64,000 nucleotides of DNA from Diadema antillarum (lineage: Eukaryota), in contig NW_027270912.1 of assembly GCF_040938485.1 (NCBI RefSeq), positions 682,001-746,000 on the forward strand, in the 5' to 3' direction. How positions within the stretch are numbered: position 1 is the stretch's first letter; every line of letters begins with the position of its first letter. The translations under genes and the position numbers were made by a program. Positions 25,398-58,004 of this stretch are shown here, piece by piece. The notes under the pieces are model-generated. The model searched no databases. It was not told where the DNA came from and worked only from the letters and a program-made list of their open reading frames with translations.

Positions 25398-25975
25398 ATG
25401 CCGAAGCAGGCTGTTTTACCATGCCGGGTGACCGAGGAGTGTCGACAGCGTCTCAGCTCCTTCCTCATCGTCCTGCTCGCTCTCGGTGTCCTCGGAGGCG
25501 TGGCGCTCATAGGTCTTGCTCTCTACATACGAATTCGTATTCGATCGAAGGCCAGTCTCATCGAGGGCTATGACTTCGACCAGCTGCCCATCACCCTTCT
25601 CAGCGTAGGCGGCGTGACAGTGCTGTTCGACTTGATCGCCGCCAAGATCGCTTCCGACATATCGGACTCGTCGCGCAGGGAGAAACTGCGCTACGTCATG
25701 CTCGGAATGGTGGTCAGCCTATCCCTGGCCGACACCGGACTCCTCGTCGGTGGCTGCATGGCCTTCATCCAGCGTAGTCTCCTCACCAAGTCGCTCAACA
25801 ACGGACTCATCACGGCCATGAGGGAGTATAAGAATGACATCAAACTGAAAGTAGAGATGGACCTTGTCCAGATGGAATTTGGATGCTGCGGTAATAACGG
25901 CTACGAAGATTGGTTTGAGATTCAATGGATCAGTGACAACTACCTCAACAGACAGAGCATGGGTAGAATTGGGAG
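25398..25975 (+). CDS. PRPH2: Peripherin-2/ROM1-like tetraspanin A, exon 1 (start uncertain)
   Basis: TM1-TM3 and DLVQMEFGCCGNNGYEDWFEIQWIS (compare PRPH2 CCGNNGFRDWF). Donor AG|GT at 25975, phase 2. The start is either the ATG at 25398 or an upstream exon joined through CAG at about 25409. Confidence 0.85.
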
Positions 25976-26506
25976 GTGGGAGAGATTTCTTTTTATACAC
26001 AGAATTTCATTTTTTTTTTTAAATGAAGATTTTTCATCTCTTATGGAAGTCCCTAGAGCCTATAGCCATTCGATAGCAAGAAGAAGACTCCCAAAAACCG
26101 TAGAAAGTGCAAACGTCAGAAATTATTGACAGCAAAATAATATCAAATAATTATGTCAATACTTGCATGTCAGATCAGGCAAAATATAAAACCATTTTTC
26201 AAGAGTCACGAGTTGTTTCATACTTGCCCCCTTTTCAAATTTGAAAGGGAGAAATTCATTTCAAATGACTGTGATAATTAGACTCCTGATTAAACTTAAA
26301 AAGAGTAGTTGTATCTTCTTGTCGAGTATCTCCTAAATTCCTCTTCAATGTCATTGATGTATGGGTTGCGATGGCAAATGCAGTGGCCTTGATAAGAAAC
26401 TGTATAGAACAGAGACCACTAATGCTGTTGAACATGAAGTATTGCAAATCTGGATGTCGATCATTCAAACATGTTTCGTGTTAACTCTTTCTTTGTCTCA
26501 TTATAG

Positions 26507-26741
26507 AGACATGGAATCTGGCGAATTCACGAATGACGACACCCCGTTTTCCTGCTGCCATCCGAGGTCGGTGAGACCCTGCATCCACCATAACGTGCAC
26601 GACAACGCCGCCCACTACCGGTACGACTACGAGTTGAGCTACACGATCCACCGCACGGGATGCAAGCAGAGGCTGATGGAGTACTACAACGCGAGGCTCA
26701 GTAACATCGGGTCCGGCGTCATGGGCTTGTTTTCTCTCCAG
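26507..26741 (+). CDS. PRPH2: Peripherin-like A, exon 2
   Basis: TAG acceptor, CAG|GT donor, 235 nt, phases 2 and 0. Encodes DDTPFSCCHPRSVRPC...HRTGC. Confidence 0.92.
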
Positions 26742-27483: not shown

Positions 27484-27633
27484 TTTATCGCGCTCCTGTC
27501 AGCCCAGTACCTCAACTCGTCGATCTGCAATGCCTTGGATCGAGGCGATCCGGAGCGAACTGCCAAGGGGTGGATATTTGAAGAGTGCCCTCTTATTACT
27601 CTCTTCAAAGCCATCGCGGGGAATTTCGTTTAG
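27484..27633 (+). CDS. PRPH2: Peripherin-like A, exon 3 (terminal, short tail)
   Basis: TAG acceptor. Encodes FIALLSAQYLNSSICNALDRGDPERTAKGWIFEECPLITLFKAIAGNFV*, homologous to the PRPH2 YLQTS...GWL tail start. Confidence 0.85.
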   Translation, partial: FIALLSAQYLNSSICNALDRGDPERTAKGWIFEECPLITLFKAIAGNFV

Positions 27634-29938: not shown

Positions 29939-30501
29939 ATGTTTTTGGCCTGTGACCTGAGTGAGGGTTGTCGTCAAACTCTCGCCATCGTTCTCCTGAT
30001 GATACACATCATCTGCTTCTTTTGCAGCGCCGCTCTATGTGCTGTTGGGTTTTTTCTCCGTGTCAGTCTCGCGGCCAAGGTCAACCTCATCGAGGGCTAC
30101 GATGGCGACGTTCTGCCCGTCGTCCTCATGGCCGTGGGCGGATTCACGGGTCTCACCAACCTCGTCGGAAGCAGAATGGCTTTCGACATCGGCAAACCGC
30201 TGCGCAGGAAACGACTGCGGTGTCTGCTGGTCGCCCTCCTCGTTCTCCTGCTCGTTGTCAAAATCGCCCTGCTCACAGCGGGCATCATGTGCTTCGCCCA
30301 TCGCCGTCATCTGGCAAAGTCTTTCCACAACGGACTCATCAAAGCCATGGAAAAGTTTCAGAACGACCACAAAATCCGGTATGACATCCACAAGCTCCAG
30401 ATGGATTTCCGATGTTGCGGTAACGGCGGCTACGAAGACTGGTTTGACATACAGTGGGTCAGCAACGACTTCCTGGATCTTCAAAACCCAAACATTCAGA
30501 G
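29939..30501 (+). CDS. PRPH2: Peripherin-2/ROM1-like tetraspanin B, exon 1
   Basis: MFLACDLSEGCRQTLA..., TM1-TM3, LQMDFRCCGNGGYEDWFDIQWVS. Donor AG|GTAAGT, phase 2. Confidence 0.92.
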
Positions 30502-31552
30502 GTAAGTTTCTGAGGTCTCCCAACACGAACGTGACTTGTCATTTTCTTGCATAGCCTAAAACTGAATACTCTCCTAACCGTCGCCAGGCTGCACATCTGA
30601 ACCATGTCAGGTCTAATGGGAGACACCCAAAAAGTGTTCACTGTTATGATAACTAACGAGTCAAGAAAGAAAACAATTATCGTATCCATATAGCTCCCCG
30701 GCCACCCCACTCTGCTTCTATAACAAATGTATAATTTTTTTTTTCTCTCTCTGTCATTCTATTTGAAAATGATATTTGTTTTTAGACCAGATTCGGACAT
30801 CCGTACCCAAGGTTTCTAGTTCTATATTTTTTGTTTGTTCATAAAAAGCCTATGATAGTATAAAGCTTATTAATTACAGAATGTATAGATCGACATCATT
30901 CTCTTGACAGTCTCCCTATGCATAGCCTCAATGGAAACCTATTCATCCTGCGAATCATTTTCATCAATGGTATTAGTCCTTTTGTTTTACATTTCATCAT
31001 GTAACCACTCTATATTTTACAATCTTGATGAGAAAGTTTCTCCTTCCAATTCAGGCATACACGTGTCATGTTCTTTCACACATAACCATACACATAACCA
31101 TACATACACGGGGGGGGGGGGGGGGGTGACCGGGGGTTCGCTGCTCTGCTGTAGGAAGAATCCCAGGGGGATGAAGCGGAGTCTTACACAATCCCTACAA
31201 TGACTGCAAACTATTCCTATGAAGTGTGTTAATGTTGCATTATTCCCATATGCCTTACAGTTTATAATATGCGACCAAATTGTAGTATCTCTGTACGATT
31301 TATTACGTACATTCTGCCTTCCGTTTTATGTTGTTCTTTGCAATTAAATGTGATCAAGAATACAGTCACGTAAACGTAAAATCGAGTCTGTTTGTAATTC
31401 TGCCAGTTATGTCACTGAGTAGATTTTCGGTAAAGACAAATTTATTCCGTCAAGAACTGTAACCTTTTTAGACTCCAAAAGTTAGTATTCCTTTCACCTC
31501 GGTTTTTTTTTTGTTCTAATTCTCTCTCTTTTCATGTTTTCATTTTCTGCAG

Positions 31553-31787
31553 CAAGATGACGAGTGGACAGTATCTCAACGATGACGTCCCATTCTCATG
31601 CTGTCGGCCATCGTCGTCGAGGCCATGCGTCCACCACTTCGTGCACGATAATGACATCCACTACCGGTACGACTACGGCATCGACCTGACTCTCCATCGG
31701 ACGGGATGCAAGACCAGCCTCATGGAGTACTTCGGATCGCGACTCGCCAGCATGGGCGCGGTCACCATGGCATTGCTTGGGTTACAG
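31553..31787 (+). CDS. PRPH2: Peripherin-like B, exon 2
   Basis: Long pyrimidine tract plus CAG, 235 nt as in copy A. Encodes DDVPFSCCRPSSSRPC...HRTGC. Donor CAG|GTACGT. Confidence 0.93.
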
Positions 31788-32958
31788 GTACGTGCGGGTT
31801 GTCGTTGTTTTTTTTTCTCTCTCTTTTTTTTAAACGGGAAACTCCATCCTGCGCTCGCTTATAGTGAGAAGTTTGGCTGATAAAACAATCAGTCATTTTA
31901 TGGGTTCGTTAAAACCTGACACAAATAAGAGCGTTCATGGAAATTATGGAGTATGAATGTTTTGACTGTTTTAAAAGAAACAGTTATATCCATCCCGACC
32001 ACTATAGATCTTTGTTTAAAAGTGATATTCTATTTTTTCCCTCTTTCTATACATTCACAATACACAAAATGATAATACCTTCACAATAAACAGAATGACT
32101 GAATTGTGTAAAACAAAACAGAAACAACCAAAAAAAAAGAAAAAAAGATACAGAATATAATACTGGAAAACACTTCATTGTTTAACTCAATTATCGAAGA
32201 ACAAAAAACAACTCACAATGTATACCTTTATAAATCATATCACTCAATGAGCATAAAATTCAAACTTATACAGAGTCATGTCTCTTTTTTTTTTACTCAA
32301 ATAGCTTTTTATAATAATCGAAATCAAGGAAGATGTGAAATCATATTTCCCCCACCCCAATACCCAACCAGATGTAAAATTAGACAGAAGCAACACTGTC
32401 CTCATCTCTTTCAATCATCCATTAATACGCACGTCAGAATTTTTAATAAAAACATTCTTTTTATAGATCATTCATTGCAAAACACCATTGTTAAAACTAA
32501 ACCAGCTTGACGTGAGGGCTATTATATTGTTTTCTATTTTAGCTCACGTCAAAAAGGAACTTTACTGAAGGCTTGTGTGTGCAAGTGGAGACCTGTGAGA
32601 TCAAGACATCATTTCTTTATTTATGTTGTCATCTAATTTGCTTAAGAGGCTTTGTAAACGGGAATTATAAGTCTTCGGACTTTTCACCCGTCTGTGTGTT
32701 TTTTTTGATGGCAATAAACCTGATCAATTTTAATTTCAATTTCAAATTTCAATTTCAATTTTAATTTCAATGATGGTATTTTTAAGCGATATGAATAATA
32801 AGGGAAAACGGTGAAACGTCACGATTCAATGACTCTCAATTCTGTCTGTGATCTTTTAATGAAATTTTCGCTATTCTGTATTTGTTACGTATACCTGTAT
32901 AGGCCCTACTATAGGGAGAGTTAACATGAGTGCGGAATGTATTCAATGTATTCAGCGA

Positions 32959-33339
32959 CTGTACAGTACTGGTTGAGATGGGGATTCTTGTTTTGAACAT
33001 TCCTAAGTGAGATAATGAGAAACCTCTTATGAAATATGAAAGAGCATGTAATTTTAAGAAGGATTCAACGTTTATTTGATGAAAATTGGTTTTCAAATGA
33101 TTGAGATATCCCAAAAAGTGATAATAATAAAAGGCGACAGGCCACAACTTTATCAGGATCTCTTTGTTTCACCTTGTTTTTGGATATCTCAGCCATTTCA
33201 AAACCGATTTTCATCAAATAAACTTTTGATACCACTTAGAATTGCATGCTCTTTGACATCTCATAGAGTGGTTTCTGAATATCTCGCAAAACATTAAAAG
33301 CTAAATCCTCACCTCGACCAGAACTGTACACACCCTTAA
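32959..33339. mobile_element. Palindromic MITE in intron 2 of peripherin-like B, left end eroded
   Basis: Inverted arms TTTATTTGATGAAAATTGGTTTT/AAAACCGATTTTCATCAAATAAA and TGTACAG..CTGGT..GAG. The right end is CCC|TTAA. Confidence 0.6.
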
Positions 33340-34595
33340 GTTCACGGTTGAATGCTATCATGCTGCATTGCATTTGTCTGTAAATTCCACTGGAGTCCCC
33401 TTGTTGTTTGCAGAAGACATAGTACATTGTAATCCGTTTGGAAACCAAAGTACACAATTCAAATAAGTCTATGTGAAATTGAAATCAATATGACATCACG
33501 AGTCTCCGTAAGCGCCAACACTGTATTCACATCTGTTCTGAAATGACGAAAAGTAAACTTCGCGGTGTAGAAAATAAGTGTTTATACAGCTGTTAAAATA
33601 TGCAATAGAATTCAGTCACGTGGTTTTTTAGGAAGGATATTGTTATCATGTTGTTGTTGTTGTTTTTAAATATTATATGCACCTTTGGTAGAGAAATAAC
33701 ACTGTGATCATAATGATGATAATAATCTCTTCTTCTGTCGACAAATTGCGCGATTTGACATTCTCCAATGCCCTGTCGAAAACTGGGTTTGTCACGTCTT
33801 CCGCCAAACGAGAGTTTTGCATGAAGGAGATGTTTAGAAGCCATCACTGGTCTTCTAACGGTGTATAGGCGTGACATCAACACTTGAGTATATATAGGCA
33901 ACGCCCACAGAACACAGTTTCGATTCCTGTTGTGCAATTGATCATTTTTTTCTTCCCATTAGATTGCAGCTCCCCAATCTAATTTTCGTTGTCGTAACAA
34001 TATCGTAAAGTGAATGGAACATCTGGGACCAGCTCATTATGTGAGCCTCATATCATAAAAGATAAAAAGAAAAATGTGCTATAACGAGCTAGGCTATTGC
34101 TGCATATTCAAGGTGTTGCATCTTTAGCACTTTCTTTTTGCACGTCATATTTCGATTCTTGCTCATGGATCATCCATGTACGATTATCTTTAACAATGGC
34201 TCATGCGTAGCTCCATGGTTCATGCATGACCTATTGGATGATAGCGACTTTTTGCATCAGCCGTATAACTTCACTTAGTGTTCCCTGCTTTTTGTCTTCA
34301 AGGCATATGCTATGGTATTTAAAAAAAACAACAAAAAACTCCACAACATTTTCTTGGGGGAAAATTATTCCTTACGCTTCCCTCATTGAGAAAAGAAACA
34401 AATATAGGCACAAACAGCTCCTATATACAATGAGTGTATATTCGGCGTGAAATACGATACGCGTCATACGTTGCACATTAAAATTGTGTATAAGCATAAA
34501 TACATCAACATCTTCAACTTACGTAATGTGAAGACTAGGGTTTGCATACATTCTTATGTTTTTGTTTGTTTGCTTGTCTGTTTTTTACCTGCCAG

Positions 34596-35669
34596 ACGGT
34601 GGCTTCTCTCCTGGTCCGATACCTACAGACATCGATCACGACAGCCATAGAAGGAGGTGACCCCGAGATGACATCACCCGGTTTCCTGTGCCCAGGAGGA
34701 GCGGCAGAGTCAGGGGCTGGAGGGGGCAAGGTTGTGAGAGGATCCCTGGACGATTTCAAAGCTCACGACTTGGACTTCGAAGATGACGACGACACCTTTA
34801 TCGACGATTCGACGTTCGATGAAGAGAACTTTGAGGAACCGGTGTACGCGAATATTCAGGAGATTAAGGACGAACCGATTTACGCGAATATTCAGGAGTT
34901 TAGGGACGAACCAATATACGCGAATATTCAAGACGTTTCCGCGAATAAGGAAGAACCTATATACGCAAATATCATCGGCACAGCTGACAATATAGCCAAT
35001 AAGCAGCAGATGACACCGCCTCAGCGGCCCAGCGCGCCTCCAAAAGCGAAACCACCGGAAGTTCCGTCACAGAGACCCAATAAGCCCCCACAGAGACCCA
35101 ACAATCCTCCAAAGAGACCGAGCAATCCTCCACCCCAAAGAAATAAAGGAGCGCAGCCAAAGACTAGTACACCGAAAAAGACTCCACCACAAAAGTCTGT
35201 CAAAGGGACTAAAGGAGGCTCCCCATCCAAGCGGGACAAAAGTTTAGGCTCAGACAAAGCGAAAAGTCCTCAGAAAGCAAGTACAAAATCGAAGTCACCC
35301 GGAGCTAGAGGTTCGACCAAACGAGCAAAGACAACCAAACCGAGAGCAGGGAAGCAAAAAGTACGATCTTCAAGTAAGTCCAAGCCAGCGAAGGCCTCCA
35401 AAAAAATGACGAAGTCCCCGAAAACCAAGAGCGTCAAACGGAGCCCGAAAAGAAGCAGCGGTAAACAATCAAAGAAACGGAGATCGAAAAACAGGAACAA
35501 CAACATTTCACCTGATTCGAGCGAGAGTTTCGTCTCGAGCGGGACAGACTCGGCCACTGAGAGCAGCGAGGACTCGAGCAGTGCAACTGACGCCAGCACC
35601 TACGATCTCGAGTCAGGCTCTAGTTCCGATGAGTCGGATCCTTCGAGTGAAACGCCATTATTGCAATGA
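34596..35669 (+). CDS. PRPH2: Peripherin-like B, exon 3 (terminal, 357 aa, very long cytoplasmic tail)
   Basis: CAG acceptor in phase 0. TVASLLVRYLQTSITTAIEGGDPE...PGFL matches the PRPH2 exon-3 start. The frame stays open through four EP(I/V)YANI motifs and Pro-rich, Lys/Ser-rich and acidic blocks to TGA. Confidence 0.88.
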   Translation, partial: TVASLLVRYLQTSITTAIEGGDPEMTSPGFLCPGGAAESGAGGGKVVRGSLDDFKAHDLDFEDDDDTFIDDSTFDEENFEEPVYANIQEIKDEPIYANIQEFRDEPIYANIQDVSANKEEPIYANIIGTADNIANKQQMTPPQRPSAPPKAKPPEVPSQRPNKPPQRPNNPPKRPSNPPPQRNKGAQPKTSTPKKTPPQKSVKGTKGGSPSKRDKSLGSDKAKSPQKASTKSKSPGARGSTKRAKTTKPRAGKQKVRSSSKSKPAKASKKMTKSPKTKSVKRSPKRSSGKQSKKRRSKNRNNNISPDSSESFVSSGTDSATESSEDSSSATDASTYDLESGSSSDESDPSSETPLLQ

Positions 35670-37987
35670 CTTCGACCACCATCTCAAAGTTTAGGGACAA
35701 AAGCAATACCCCCATTCCCTCATTTCCTCAAAAGTTTTGTGTTTGGACAACTTCATCGCTATGAGAAGTAGCCTATACCAAATCCGTATTTCAAAATACT
35801 CATGATTGTGGCCGTGATAGGTCAAAGAATTACGGTGTCTGAAATATCTTTCATTTTTGGTTGGTTTGCTGGAGACATTTCAGGTTGCCTAGAGGCAACG
35901 CGAAAGTGTGTAAACTTGTGGCCCATATGCGGTGATCTTGAAGTTCGTCTTCCAGATGTTAACCTGCACGAGATACCAATTCTATCTGAACAAGAAAACT
36001 GAGGTTCGTCCGGCAATACTGGCTAATATTCAGAGCATCTTTGGTATTTCGAAAAGACATAGAAAAGAAGTAAGTCTATATTTTGAGAAATGTATACCTG
36101 TACACTAAAGCATTTTGACACTGAAGTTCTGTGAGCTGAGAGTACATTTCCATAAATGATTTCTAAACAAAATCATTGTAAGAATTAAAAAAGGATCATA
36201 CCGACATTCACATTATGGTTCACTGCTCAACAGCAGATAATATAATATGTGTTTGATCTAAGACATTATCTAACACCTACACTATCCTCTTCAGGCGAAC
36301 TGTTGTCGATATTGAGAAAGAGGGCAATCGAGTGGGGGTCAATGCCCTACAACTCATTTACGCGCAGACGATTAGAGGCCTGCAATCGAGAAGCTCTTTG
36401 GGCGGTGTCCAGCCATCGCGGAGAACGATCGATATTTCTCCCGGGACGTGATCGGAACACCCATTGGCTCATTAAAATCGTCATGAACATTGAGTGTGGA
36501 GAGGACGCGCTGTGTCGAGAGACTTGTTTGTCTGATATGCGCCATCAACGTTGACTTCCTTTGGTTCGAACAAGTTCCTCTGTATCAGCTAGGCCATGCT
36601 GACCAAGCCGTATCAAGTATTTAGTGATGTCTAATTTTGCTTCTTTTTTGAATTCGCTCTGTCTTCTCTTGTTTGATTATTGGTGGGCGTTCTTGTTTTT
36701 GTCATGATCAAACATGTATTATTGAACCCTGTCTACTGTCTGGTCAAGAAAAAGAAATCGGTAGTCCTATAATTGCGATAGGATCATGTTGTGTTGAAGT
36801 TCAGACACAGGGAATGTATTCCAGGTTCAGAAATGAAATTCTATTTTTGAAGTCTTTACATCACCACGTACAAGACTGCTATTATGAAGACTGGTTCCAA
36901 GTGGGGAAGCGCTGTCATGATTTTAGTTGTTCACTGTCCCACATTTTCATGCTCTTTCAGTATTGATGAATTTAACACACGATGGCTCTTCTTTGGAAAT
37001 ATTTTCCTTTTTTTTTTTAAATCACTTGAATGACTGAATACTTTTGTGCATGTCCAGTTATTAAAGGGGAACTTTTTCCGTTTATGGGTCAATATAAAGC
37101 GCAATTCCAATCCATGTCCAAACTGGCCTCAAGAAATAGAGTAGAACAAAACATCTGTCATTCCATGAGCACTCTATGTTGATGTCGTTTTAAAAACAAC
37201 TTTGCAACTGTAATACTTTTCCTGTCAACGACTTATCAATCTTAAGCTGTCACAACTGCAAAATGATATCAAAGATGTCATAATTATCATTCGATTAATT
37301 TCAAAAGACGACAGTTTAATCAAGATTGATACTTGGGTCAATGGGACATTAAGTCCATTGATGTCTACGTTATCACCTTCACAACAGTGAGCATGACCAA
37401 AATATCTTTTTCCGTTAAAAAAACCGACAAAAATATATGGCGCTTAGAATTACAAAGCCTTAGGGTTTTGTTTTGTTATTTTGACATTTTTTCTGTAAAT
37501 TATCATACATGTCTACGGCCTCCGTCGTGATCACGTCTATGATAATTATAATCACTATCGGCGCGTTGTCAATTACCGATATAAAGTCGCTGTTACCAGA
37601 TCGTAATAAGCACACTATCTTTCCCAGATTCAAATCTTTGTATCGTTTATCAAACACCGCTCATTTTTTTTTTAATATAATGAATCTTAATATAAAGAAA
37701 CTTAGCCTTCGTAAGAAGGTATCGATTGTTTCGAACTTGTGATTTCTTTTATGTTCATTCTTCCGTATTTGCAATCAATTGTGGACCAGCGAGGCGTGAT
37801 ACACTGTATCACAATATCGCACGCGAATAAAATAATCTTGATCTGATGAAAGAGTTTCGGCTTTCTTTTCTGGCTTGGGTATGGGGCTTTCCCTGTAAAC
37901 TTGGAAAAGTACGAAAATAATTATTTCCGCTGTGATGTGGGTGATAGATCAGGGTGACACTCATGGGACATGCATGCGACTTACATT

Positions 37988-41277: not shown

Positions 41278-41410
41278 NNNNNNNNNNNNNNNNNNNNNNN
41301 NNNNNNNNNNNNNNNNNNNNNNNNNNNNNNNNNNNNNNNNNNNNNNNNNNNNNNNNNNNNNNNNNNNNNNNNNNNNNNNNNNNNNNNNNNNNNNNNNNNN
41401 NNNNNNNNNN
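41278..41410. other. Assembly gap (133 N)
   Basis: Run of N. Confidence 1.
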
Positions 41411-41707
41411 NAATGTTTTTGTCCTTGAGCGTTCACCACGAGAATTAAATGAAAACTGCTATGAGAACACTCCATATTGCTTCAAAACCAAATGACTTTT
41501 AATTGGGAATGAATCGAGAATAGAATTCAGAACGCTAAAAGTAGATTAATTTGTGACTGAAAAATTCACTGTGCGTGCGGAAATTTCATCAAGTTAACTT
41601 TACGTTGAGCAAGGCAATAAACTAACTTAAAGGGAAATTCCAGGCGATTCTTATAATTTCAACATCGTGTAGTGCATAAATCGATAGCACCATGGGATCT
41701 AATTGAT

Positions 41708-43955
41708 GTGGTCCTTCAGCTGATAAACCAATACTCTGAAAACCCAACACATACTACATCATGAACAAGGATGATGACATACTGTATGATGTTCATCTAT
41801 TCTAGTATAATGAAGCAAGCATTGTAAATCCGTTACAATGCACTTAACAACTTCACCTGTGTATAATTTATGCATGTTTTTCTTTTGTTCTGCGTCACTA
41901 GCATTCACTAGAACACAATACGGGGCAAAACTAACTGAGAGATTCACAGAAAGAAAACTATTTAAAAAGGAGGGGAATAGAAAAAAATATATATATTATG
42001 GTTGTGTTGCTGGACAAAATGACAGCTAAAACAAAATGATAGCCTGAAAGAAATTAGAACTTATTTCTATTGATTGATGTGAAGATACTATATGATCACA
42101 CAGGAGTGAACAACTCAGAATTAGGGAAGCGGAGAGGGGTAAAAGAAAGAAAGAAATGTAAGAACGAGATGGGGGGGGGGGGGGCATTTTTTAATCCTGT
42201 CTTTAACGCGGAGTTGGCAAACGAAATGATGGTGCGTCACATTATTATCATAGTGAGCCTATAAATCCGTCTCGGATGTGCCACATCCAGTAAACGGTCG
42301 TTTTTTATTATTACCTCTGGAACGACTCTGCGGCGAAGAGCTAACGATGAAATTGGAGTCTCCTATACCCGGTTTTTACATCTATGTATTGCCCAGGTCT
42401 CCCGCGCGGCTGCCAGGGCCTCTTGAGAACATTAACCAACTCCCTCTCTATACTACGGATTGGGGGCCGCGCTGCGCTCATTATGTTAATTAACGCGCTA
42501 GAGATGGAATTCCCGTGACGGCCCGATGTCACGTTCGGCACTCTCCGAAAAAAACATTCAGCGGAAACAATATCATGCTCCCCTCAACACGTTTTCTTTC
42601 TATCGTTTTGTTTTTCTGTTCCCTTTTTCTTTGAAGGAACATGTTCCATGCAAAGTCAATTCTGCCCTGGAGAGCAGACATGGAACCCGTTTACGCATTT
42701 ACGTCGAAAATAACTGGGCCCATATTGCTTAAAATGGAGGTCAGATCTTAATTGTAAAAACTTGGATTTGAAGTTTCAGTTTATATCATTCTGTTTACTA
42801 TATCTCATGCTACGATACTTCCACAAAAGGTCACATCTATCTAGACTGTGAGTAATAAACACTTACAATGATGAGTGATATCAAATACATAATAATGCTA
42901 AGTTTCAAAAGTGTTGTACTATTTAATTTTGTTTACTTGTTCGCGATTAACAAATCAAGTAGATTATGATCATATCCTACGCCGAAGTCATGAAATGAGT
43001 CTAGTTGATTTCGTTGACATGGTGTTAAGCAGGAATTGTCTCAACAATATTAACCTCATCTTTATGCATATGGGGTCTCGAATGACCTGTAGGCCCCCTA
43101 AACTATAGACACGTTAAACAAGAATCCCCCCCCCCCCCCCGAGTTTGATTAACCTCTGTGCGTTCGTCCTCTTGAGATGGTGATTCATTCACTAGCCTCT
43201 CCTCATACCCTGGAGTGCTGTGATGACAATGCTGAAGATATCATCATGGTAGGACCCCCTTGAAAGCGCTGATGAGGCTACCTCTGATAGATAAAACCAT
43301 CATCTTTTTACCCACTGGGAATCAAATCACAAACACAGTGACTCACATGACCTGAGGTATATTATTACGTGTTTATCTACATTGCTTGATTCGTATCTTA
43401 AATTGTCATTCATCTAAAATGTTAGAGGGGCATATAAAGTATGGTAAAAAAAGAGAGCATTTGGTAATGACCTTTTTTTTTTCTTCTTCTTGAAACCAAC
43501 CATCAGAAGATGCAATTTCCAGATTCTTTACCTCATTTTGATTAACATCCAATGTTCATCTCGTGTGCTTCTAGCCAGCATATCTTATAGGGATATTCGA
43601 CGAAACGAAGAAAAAATCATTATCTGCCCTGATTCTGTGACTGGTATTGTTACGTCATTACGAATTCATATCTATTTTGATCTATCTATGATGATGATGA
43701 AGATGAAAATAAGCCCCAGGATTTTCATAATTTCACATTATGTAGTACATAAATTGACAGCTCCGTGAATAGTTTTGTGGAATTTATTGTGGTCCTTGAG
43801 CAGATAATGCAGTACTCTGAAAAGCTCAAAACAATTGCACTGAACAAGGATGATGACATAGGGGGCTCATATAATCTATATTCTAGTAATGTAGCAATGT
43901 AATTCCATTACCTTACCACTCGCTTAACAAATTCACCTGTGAAGAATTTATCCAT
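41708..43955 (+). repeat. Two diverged copies of a dispersed repeat (about 41708-41870 and 43787-43955)
   Basis: Shared blocks GTGGTCCTT, TACTCTGAAAA, TGAACAAGGATGATGACATA, TATTCTAGTA and CTTAACAA.TTCACCTGTG in the same order. Confidence 0.6.
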
Positions 43956-57724: not shown

Positions 57725-58004
57725 NNNNNNNNNNNNNNNNNNNNNNNNNNNNNNNNNNNNNNNNNNNNNNNNNNNNNNNNNNNNNNNNNNNNNNNNNNNN
57801 NNNNNNNNNNNNNNNNNNNNNNNNNNNNNNNNNNNNNNNNNNNNNNNNNNNNNNNNNNNNNNNNNNNNNNNNNNNNNNNNNNNNNNNNNNNNNNNNNNNN
57901 NNNNNNNNNNNNNNNNNNNNNNNNNNNNNNNNNNNNNNNNNNNNNNNNNNNNNNNNNNNNNNNNNNNNNNNNNNNNNNNNNNNNNNNNNNNNNNNNNNNN
58001 NNNN
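57725..58004. other. Assembly gap (280 N) within TATC-like repeats
   Basis: Run of N. Confidence 1.

Follow-up and report, generated by a model that had tools for sequence, protein, structure and literature searches.

The question raised by this locus is how an array of near-identical tyrosine motifs came to lie in the tail of a tetraspanin, and what such an array might do there. In a 64,000-nucleotide stretch of the Diadema antillarum genome (contig NW_027270912.1, positions 682,001 to 746,000; referred to as the window), the last exon of a peripherin-like tetraspanin gene, here termed gene B, reads EPVYANIQEIKD / EPIYANIQEFRD / EPIYANIQDVSANKE / EPIYANII at 34836-34976 (+), in the frame of the open reading frame 34542-35669 (+). 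Judged by sequence comparison, the four units are best explained as copies of an old bilaterian linear motif, multiplied here via 36-nt tandem duplication.

In-frame translation of this interval gave one EPVYANI and three EPIYANI cores, in agreement with the three exact EPIYA and one EPVYA of the initial annotation. Tandem Repeats Finder reported a 36-nt period at 34836-34930 with 2.6 copies and 89% matches, which bears out the duplication unit proposed earlier, with the qualification that Unit 4 has only the 21-nt core in common with the other units (Table 1). Codon usage varies across the units (Pro CCG/CCG/CCA/CCT, Ile ATT/ATA, Ala GCG/GCA, Ile ATT/ATC), and the synonymous variation pointed out before (CCG/CCA/CCT, ATT/ATA) is therefore present. 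The array is local and not a dispersed repeat, because a six-frame scan of the 64 kb for EP[IVL]Y[AGS] returned a single further match, at 42683, which is unrelated.

Table 1. Coordinates of gene B, of its tail features and of the neighbouring genes in the window.
Feature	Position	Strand	Remarks
Gene B exon 1	29939-30501	+	ATG to donor AG|GTAAGT; N-terminus, transmembrane segments (TM) 1-3, start of large extracellular loop
Gene B exon 2	31553-31787	+	acceptor cag|C, donor CAG|GTACGT; rest of large loop (PFSCC), TM4
Gene B exon 3	34596-35669	+	acceptor ccag|ACG, stop TAA ends 35669; end of TM4, cytoplasmic tail of ~350 aa
Juxtamembrane segment, RYLQTS...GDPE..PGFL	34617-34688	+	common to vertebrate PRPH2/ROM1 (bovine PRPH2 7zw1_A); kept in all tails compared
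Acidic Phe/Ser/Thr box with DDSTFD (34803-34820)	34776-34835	+	directly before Unit 1
Unit 1, EPVYANIQEIKD	34836-34871	+	Tyr codon 34845-34847
Unit 2, EPIYANIQEFRD	34872-34907	+	Tyr codon 34881-34883
Unit 3, EPIYANIQDVSANKE	34908-34952	+	Tyr codon 34917-34919
Unit 4, EPIYANII	34953-34976	+	Tyr codon 34962-34964; core only, other spacer
Proline-rich stretch, PP[QK]RP repeats	35013-35141	+	21-nt period at 35068-35133 (Tandem Repeats Finder)
Lys/Ser/Pro-rich basic stretch, isoelectric point ~12	35142-35525	+	contains conserved KKRRSKNRNNNI at 35472-35507
Acidic Ser-rich C-terminus ending SETPLLQ (35646-35666)	35526-35666	+	assigned by composition
Gene A, tandem paralogue upstream of gene B	exons ~25398-25960, 26506-26741, 27484-27630	+	short tail, without Tyr motif
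TBCC gene, intronless, 400 aa	15672-16874	+	Pfam TBCC 8.9e-41, TBCC_N 1.7e-31

Conservation of the motif in peripherin-like tails

Relatives were collected by an exhaustive HMMER search with query residues 1-430, which yielded 687 family members at E <=0.001; tails were cut at the RYLQTS anchor, and the species named below are those among the matches listed. Word-based searches with the tail returned few matches because the tail is of low complexity, and its conservation surfaced via the exhaustive representative search. Many peripherin-like tails share a motif of the form [DE]-P-[ILV]-Y-[AE]-N-[ILV], frequently preceded by a DDSTFD box, and EPIYAN[IV] is carried exactly in invertebrate peripherin tails (Table 2). 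The array of the deep-sea vent gastropod Gigantopelta aegis is the closest parallel to that of Diadema, in another phylum. Its RRNS spacer is a possible site for a basophilic Ser kinase.

Table 2. Tyrosine motifs in the tails of peripherin-like proteins of other species.
Source	Motifs
Crinoid Anneissia	QPLYENQ, QIYQND, DPIYENM
Echinoid Lytechinus (P0163, L. variegatus)	EPIYENI x2, EHIYDDI, EDLYENI
Echinoid S. purpuratus (old model P0153)	EPLYENI, EDLYETI, EDLYENI, ENLYENI
Echinoderm-like ENA contig protein P0002	DPVYANL, ELIYVNL, EPIYENL, SIYDNE, EPIYANI
Priapulid Priapulus	EPIYANV
Brachiopod Lingula	EPIYENI
Annelid Owenia	EHIYANI
Bivalve Sinanodonta	DPLYENV, EPLYENL, TPLYENF
Gastropod Littorina	EPIYENI x2
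Gastropod Nucella	ESLYENI x3
Gastropod Babylonia	EPIYENI
Gastropod Gigantopelta aegis P0164, residues ~341-417	EPIYDEI, EPIYANI, EPIYANV x2, DIYANA; 22-residue unit

Across 57 distinct tails the strict motif occurred at 31 sites in 16 proteins, compared to 0.0 in 500 composition-preserving shuffles, a contrast to be read in light of the strict pattern having been drawn up after the data were seen. The looser pattern [ILV]YxN gives the fairer figure, with 43 sites vs 2.4 in shuffles and 19 proteins vs 2.3 expected; the protein counts are the safer of the two, as site counts are inflated by tandem copies and related species. Around the 316 tail tyrosines of these homologues, Ile at +3 was enriched 4.5-fold, Asn at +2 4.1-fold, Ile at -1 3.4-fold, Glu at -3 2.9-fold and Pro at -2 2.2-fold, and position +1 was enriched for Glu or Ala.

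The surroundings of the motif are retained as well. In Diadema, P0002, Holothuria P0014, S. purpuratus P0153, L. variegatus P0163 and the bivalve Pinctada P0169, the first Tyr unit is immediately preceded by an acidic box containing DDSTFD. By position, the counterpart of Unit 1 is DPVYANL in P0002 and a decayed copy in S. purpuratus (EPVNAN) and L. variegatus (EPVTAY), and all long-tailed echinoid proteins keep several YxN sites despite turnover in the number and place of units.

In other echinoderms and in hemichordates, for which a check of conservation had been proposed, the outcome was mixed: the motif was kept in the crinoid and the echinoids, and was weaker or decayed in Holothuria (GYENF) and in the hemichordate Ptychodera (EPIYEEP). 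Forms of this weaker or decayed kind were also seen in Pinctada (EHIYEEI) and Haliotis (EHIYHSI). No [ILV]YxN was found in the tails of the sampled amphioxus, hagfish, teleost ROM1b and mammalian ROM1, which for these chordate members is what had been stated of vertebrate PRPH2/ROM1 tails, nor in those of two nemerteans and of echinoid gene A.

Several of the records themselves deserve comment. S. purpuratus P0153 (886 aa) merges gene A exons 1-2 and gene B exons 2-3 into a chimera, and P0163, the orthologue in L. variegatus, bears the name 'trithorax group protein osa-like', evidently from its low-complexity tail; both names conceal a peripherin identity. Haliotis rufescens P0161 was deposited in GenBank as 'sperm protein' (AGJ90066.1), a record name that hints, as a lead only, at the presence of invertebrate peripherin-like proteins in sperm, whose flagellum is a cilium.

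Gene model, expression and family identity

Gene B comprises three coding exons bounded by GT-AG sites, with a spliced frame of 623 codons plus stop. In the resulting 623-aa protein the array tyrosines are Y350, Y362, Y374 and Y389. The Diadema antillarum protein P0001, listed at NCBI as 'uncharacterized protein', has identical exon junctions and departs from it at seven residues. Four public runs (X1-X4) hold exon 3. Runs X2-X4 carry intron sequence and look like DNA, so that X1 alone provides expression support: in this run (78 Mb of contigs) exon depth was 38.8 and most intron bins were 0, the behavior of RNA. X1 record 2, a contig of 2257 nt, aligns to 30182-30499, 31551-31784 and 34593-35800, its own coordinates running on without a break across the three segments; it is spliced exactly at the predicted sites, spans the whole array and extends ~500 nt past 35800. 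The 31787-34596 junction and read-through of the exon are thereby confirmed, and the transcript passes through the array instead of ending or being spliced out before 34836, which supports the placement of the array in an expressed C-terminal tail. The contig is ~3% divergent from the window and derives from another individual or a sister species (organism A).

A gene-model artefact, in which the array exon was part of a different gene or of an untranslated region, unconnected to the tetraspanin, would be in keeping with the faulty models of this locus in other urchins, namely the gene A-gene B fusion in P0153 and the misnamed L. variegatus orthologue. Its probability is nevertheless negligible, given that one X1 contig links exons 1, 2 and 3 in frame at GT-AG sites, the frame of exon 3 stays open for 357 codons, and the start of exon 3 (..VRYLQTS..) completes TM4 and aligns to PRPH2. 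The runs of N in the window (41278-41411 and 57725-58004) lie outside gene B.

The initial description as a peripherin/ROM1-type tetraspanin was borne out by profile and structure matches. Exon 1 matched the Pfam Tetraspanin family (PF00335) at 5.6e-20 and exon 2 continues the profile, and P0001 also carries PF00335. In a search of solved structures gene B matched PRPH2 at 1.5e-48 and ROM1 at 3.8e-27, compared to 1e-6 or worse for TSPAN7, CD53 and others. The CCG, PFSCC, C and GC loop cysteines and RYLQTS align residue for residue with bovine PRPH2 (7zw1_A). The seventh, unpaired loop cysteine of PRPH2 was not found in the urchin protein, which has six loop cysteines and a 5-residue alignment gap at that place. 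This extra cysteine of vertebrate PRPH2 is Cys150, used for disulfide-linked higher oligomers; it concerns vertebrate-type rim oligomers and has no bearing on subfamily membership. From these matches gene B can be assigned as the long-tailed member of two tandem PRPH2/ROM1-family tetraspanin genes in Diadema.

Selection on the core of the units

Purifying selection keeps the core peptide while the spacers drift. In pairwise comparison among the four units, the 7-codon core showed 13 synonymous and 3 replacement codon differences (all Ile/Val at -1), and the five codons after the core showed 2 synonymous and 23 replacement differences. Between gene B and organism A, 26 of the 34 exonic differences listed were synonymous and 8 were replacements; within the array, all five differences among those listed were synonymous (34841, 34850, 34880, 34952, 34964). 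The earlier suggestion of protein-level selection is supported by both the core vs spacer pattern and the comparison with organism A. Organism A and P0001 match the window in having four units.

Repeats of this kind can also arise without function, if a 36-nt segment has recently slipped or been duplicated in a disordered tail that evolves fast. In keeping with such neutral low-complexity expansion, other parts of the tail are repetitive as well (21-nt Pro-rich repeat, K/S-rich stretch), and the number and position of Tyr units vary among echinoids, which include the decayed copies in S. purpuratus and L. variegatus. Neutral expansion would not, however, give opposite substitution patterns in core and spacer, exclusively synonymous differences to organism A in the array (among those listed), four units alike in all three sequences, or a 7-residue motif that recurs across six or more phyla and is absent from all shuffles. 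It is largely refuted by these observations and is considered very improbable.

Evolutionary history of the motif

A quick maximum-likelihood tree of the tetraspanin domains (52 rows) was built with tails excluded beyond 30 residues after the anchor; many of its deep forks are open. Gene B paired with the long-tailed Lytechinus protein, with support of 99 in the Shimodaira-Hasegawa-like approximate likelihood ratio test (SH-aLRT), and gene A, which is orthologous to S. purpuratus 'peripherin-2-like' P0004, paired with that protein (SH-aLRT 100). The two pairs are sisters (SH-aLRT 91), and both fall inside a group of echinoderms, hemichordates and chordates including amphioxus, hagfish, teleost and mammalian members (SH-aLRT 84). 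The duplication is therefore probably echinoid-specific, with loss of the long tail in gene A.

Proteins bearing the motif are scattered over the deuterostome and protostome halves of the tree, requiring 11 changes by parsimony. The reading adopted here is that the motif probably had one ancient origin followed by many losses; given the DDSTFD box they have in common, convergence is a much less likely account than homology for the tails on the two sides of the protostome-deuterostome split. Gigantopelta, Littorina, Nucella, Lytechinus and Strongylocentrotus carry tandem arrays that arose independently, only the 4-unit tandem form being local to Diadema. Such independent multiplication in other lineages argues that copy number (valency) matters. 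The initial annotation had seen a structural peripherin turned into a scaffold in this lineage. This does not agree with the same motif in protostome and other echinoderm tails, which indicates that the motif is ancestral and that the chordates are the ones without it.

A broader scenario is offered tentatively, as a serious possibility that falls short of an expectation. The ancestral bilaterian peripherin would have been both a membrane shaper and a signalling adaptor, with a DDSTFD box followed by EPIY[AE]N[IV]. Echinoderms, priapulids, brachiopods, annelids and molluscs would have retained the motif for more than half a billion years, with independent multiplication whenever higher valency was favoured, and the chordate line would have dropped it as PRPH2/ROM1 specialised for photoreceptor disc rims. 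As part of the same tentative scenario, EPIY[AE]N[IV] may be an EPxYAx[VI]-type 'master-key' sequence imitated by bacterial effectors.

Architecture of the tail

The tail runs in the order juxtamembrane segment, acidic box, Tyr units, PP[QK]RP repeats, basic K/S/P stretch and acidic Ser-rich end. This order is identical in S. purpuratus and Lytechinus, although there the Tyr units and Pro repeats derive from other repeat units. Pro repeats also follow the Tyr motifs in S. purpuratus (PPPQKPK x4), in L. variegatus and in P0002 (PPKRP). The C-terminal tail of a tetraspanin is cytoplasmic. No Pfam match was obtained in the tail of gene B, which on its polar composition and in the absence of a Pfam domain is predicted to be disordered.

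The basic patch KKRRSKNRNNNI is kept in Diadema, S. purpuratus and Lytechinus tails within an otherwise fast-evolving K/S-rich stretch. A KNRNNNI element recurs in S. purpuratus, L. variegatus and Anneissia tails, the Anneissia form being RNRNRNNC. The S. purpuratus and L. variegatus proteins end in SSDTPLLR. Together, the acidic Ser cluster and the end ETPLLQ (Diadema) or DTPLLR (S. purpuratus, Lytechinus) are similar to a sorting signal of the acidic-cluster DxxLL (GGA) type that stops one residue short of the C-terminus.

Proposed function of the array

Our assessment leans, by a little, toward the array being a multivalent phosphotyrosine docking platform on a tetraspanin, like a transmembrane adaptor. 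The array tyrosines would be phosphorylated by a Src/Abl-type kinase, which is proposed because position -1 is aliphatic and is preceded by acidic residues, as expected of substrates of this type; this combination is the usual preference of Src/Abl/Fes-type kinases. Each pY-x-N would then dock an SH2 adaptor of the Grb2/Drk type, the PP[KQ]RP repeats just downstream may act as SH3 ligands, and the tetraspanin would serve as a multivalent adaptor anchored in the membrane, in the manner of LAT or PAG. A Grb2-type SH2 ligand is placed first because Asn +2 is invariant (4/4 Diadema units) and conserved. PIYANIQ closely resembles Shc Tyr317 (PSYVNVQ) and the LAT YVNV/YENL sites, and the immunoglobulin tail tyrosine (ITT) motif is YxNM. 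EPIYA-type segments are known as substrates of Src-family kinases (SFKs) (PMC3593179, PMC4946704), and EPIYA-type motifs in disordered regions have been described as SFK substrates and SH2 ligands that expand by tandem duplication (PMC3593179). The specificity of the Grb2 SH2 domain is given as pY-X-N-X (PMC3787023), and ITT-like YxN motifs are reported to recruit Grb2 (PMC4647266). Grb2 in particular is our best guess for the reader and is held with less assurance than phosphotyrosine docking as a whole.

Several points weigh against phosphotyrosine docking, in addition to the limits on the motif counts given above. All four Diadema units also fit the pattern YxxΦ (YANI), and both roles could coexist. 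The sequence pYANI also fits the preferences of Src-family and Csk SH2 domains. Several lineages have lost the motif or carry it in decayed form (chordates, two nemerteans, Haliotis, Ptychodera, Holothuria and echinoid gene A, among others), so that there are contexts in which it can be dispensed with. A single-sequence AlphaFold2 model of residues 1-440 had a mean predicted local distance difference test score (pLDDT) of 45 and a predicted template modelling score (pTM) of 0.26, too poor to inform on the tail.

The fit to YxxΦ underlies the main alternative, in which the units would be unphosphorylated sorting signals, read by the mu subunits of AP-1/2/3 and steering endocytosis or endosomal/ciliary trafficking; the C-terminal YxxΦ of CD63, CD151 and CD82 acts as such a signal. 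A bulky hydrophobic residue stands at +3 in all four Diadema units and in most orthologous copies (YENI, YANV, YENL, YENM, YETI, YDEI), consistent with the 4.5-fold enrichment of Ile at this position and with 114 YxxΦ sites vs 68 in shuffles, and the acidic-cluster xTPLL end of the tail looks like a second sorting signal. Sorting would nonetheless leave the conserved Glu-Pro-Ile before Tyr and Asn +2 unexplained. Asn +2 is kept where Φ at +3 is not, as in YENQ and YQND (Anneissia), YDNE (P0002), YENN (P0016) and YANA (Gigantopelta), and a single signal is enough for sorting, yet arrays arose repeatedly. Sorting alone is possible and rather unlikely.

A further variant keeps phosphorylation and changes the readers: a scaffold like those of CagA and Pragmin, with Csk and/or SHP2 as main readers, which would control Src-family kinase activity locally at a tetraspanin membrane domain. 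Ala +1 and Ile +3 fit the preference of the Csk SH2 domain, and EPIYA is exact in three units. EPIYAN[IV] fits the EPxYAxV of bacterial effectors, and the EPIYA of Pragmin binds Csk (PMC3593179, PMC4946704). Across phyla, however, +1 is Glu as often as Ala or more, so that 'EPIYA' itself is not the conserved unit. Asn +2, with Ile +3 the most enriched flanking residue, is no determinant for Csk or SHP2, and -2 is Pro and not aliphatic as in SHP2 N-SH2/ITIM-type sites (immunoreceptor tyrosine-based inhibition motif, ITIM). This variant is judged quite improbable, and the comparison with CagA and Pragmin (Csk, SHP2) made in the initial annotation comes down to a five-letter resemblance, the conserved unit being longer with Asn +2 as its most constant flank.

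Other motif classes were considered and set aside. An ITIM was rejected with Pro, not Ile/Val/Leu/Ser, at -2, and an NPxY motif for phosphotyrosine-binding (PTB) domains with no Asn at -3. Ile -1, Ala +1 and Asn +2 lie outside the extended LC3-interacting (LIR) pattern, and the SH2 domains of PLC-gamma or SHP2, which both want an aliphatic +1, were judged unlikely. The patterns for canonical class I/II SH3 ligands did not fit PP[QK]RP, for which 'SH3 ligand' is a suggestion only.

Comparison with known systems

Vertebrate PRPH2/ROM1 are the closest known counterparts in domain and gene structure, sharing the CCG, PFSCC and GC cysteines, RYLQTS, a gene with three coding exons, a position beside TBCC and membership of the same deuterostome clade. 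They differ in the tail, which in vertebrates is ~60-100 aa without [ILV]YxN and in the urchin ~350 aa with a Tyr array, Pro-rich repeats and a basic K/S stretch. In Diadema the TBCC gene lies directly upstream of both peripherin-like genes on the same strand; human PRPH2 likewise adjoins TBCC.

For the array itself, bacterial EPIYA effectors such as H. pylori CagA, together with Pragmin, offer exact tandem EPIYA, a region disordered by composition and a copy number set via segment duplication, a mode described in PMC3593179, and EPIYAN[IV] matches their EPxYAxV. The urchin protein is, in contrast, a spliced animal membrane protein, neither a secreted bacterial effector nor a pseudokinase, and outside the motif it shows no homology to them. 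Bacterial EPIYA effectors are delivered by type III/IV secretion, whereas gene B has GT-AG introns and orthologues across Metazoa. Furthermore, the unit of the urchin family includes Asn +2, and at +1 Glu and Ala are equally common. In mammalian proteomes EPxYAxV is under-represented, with Pragmin among the few mammalian EPIYA proteins (PMC3593179).

Grb2-type sites (Shc, LAT, ITT) and the adaptors LAT, NTAL and PAG resemble the urchin tail in combining a membrane anchor, a long disordered cytoplasmic tail and several pY-x-N-type sites. LAT, NTAL and PAG are single-pass raft adaptors, whereas the urchin anchor is a four-pass peripherin-subfamily tetraspanin without sequence homology to them. 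The C-terminal sorting motifs of the tetraspanins CD63 (GYEVM), CD151 (YRSL) and CD82 (YSKV) share the superfamily, a cytoplasmic C-terminal tail and the YxxΦ pattern, but are single motifs near the C-terminus of a ~10-residue tail, in contrast to four mid-tail copies with conserved positions -3 to -1 and +2. The array would thus combine known kinds, a tetraspanin and an adaptor-type tail of phosphotyrosine motifs, in a new form.

A 2010 tetraspanin survey knew RDS orthologues only from invertebrate deuterostomes (PMC2965184). Literature searches on EPIYA-type motifs in tetraspanins and on invertebrate peripherin tails, including sea-urchin peripherin and the abalone sperm proteome, found no paper, and none describing such an array was found, consistent with the initial annotation, to which no description of the arrangement was known.

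Other features of the locus

Intron 2 of gene B contains a region of extreme repetition at 32636-33431, where summed word depth in the DNA-like runs reached up to millions. Many 'opposite strands' joints fall at ~33047/33225, with loose ends at 33007 and 33226, and the region looks like a high-copy foldback or an element of the miniature inverted-repeat transposable element (MITE) type.

Implications for the peripherin family

The units provide a clean case of birth and death of a short linear motif with selection for valency. If phosphotyrosine docking is true, the locus would hold an endogenous animal EPIYA-type tandem array, which bears on the question of which host motif the bacterial EPIYA effectors imitate. 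If the units serve as sorting signals only, they would be a useful but modest marker of ancestral tail architecture. Peripherin-2 is known almost only as a vertebrate photoreceptor disc rim protein and as a retinal-disease gene, and for the role of the family before vertebrate outer segments, a conserved and repeatedly amplified tyrosine motif in invertebrate tails gives a concrete handle.

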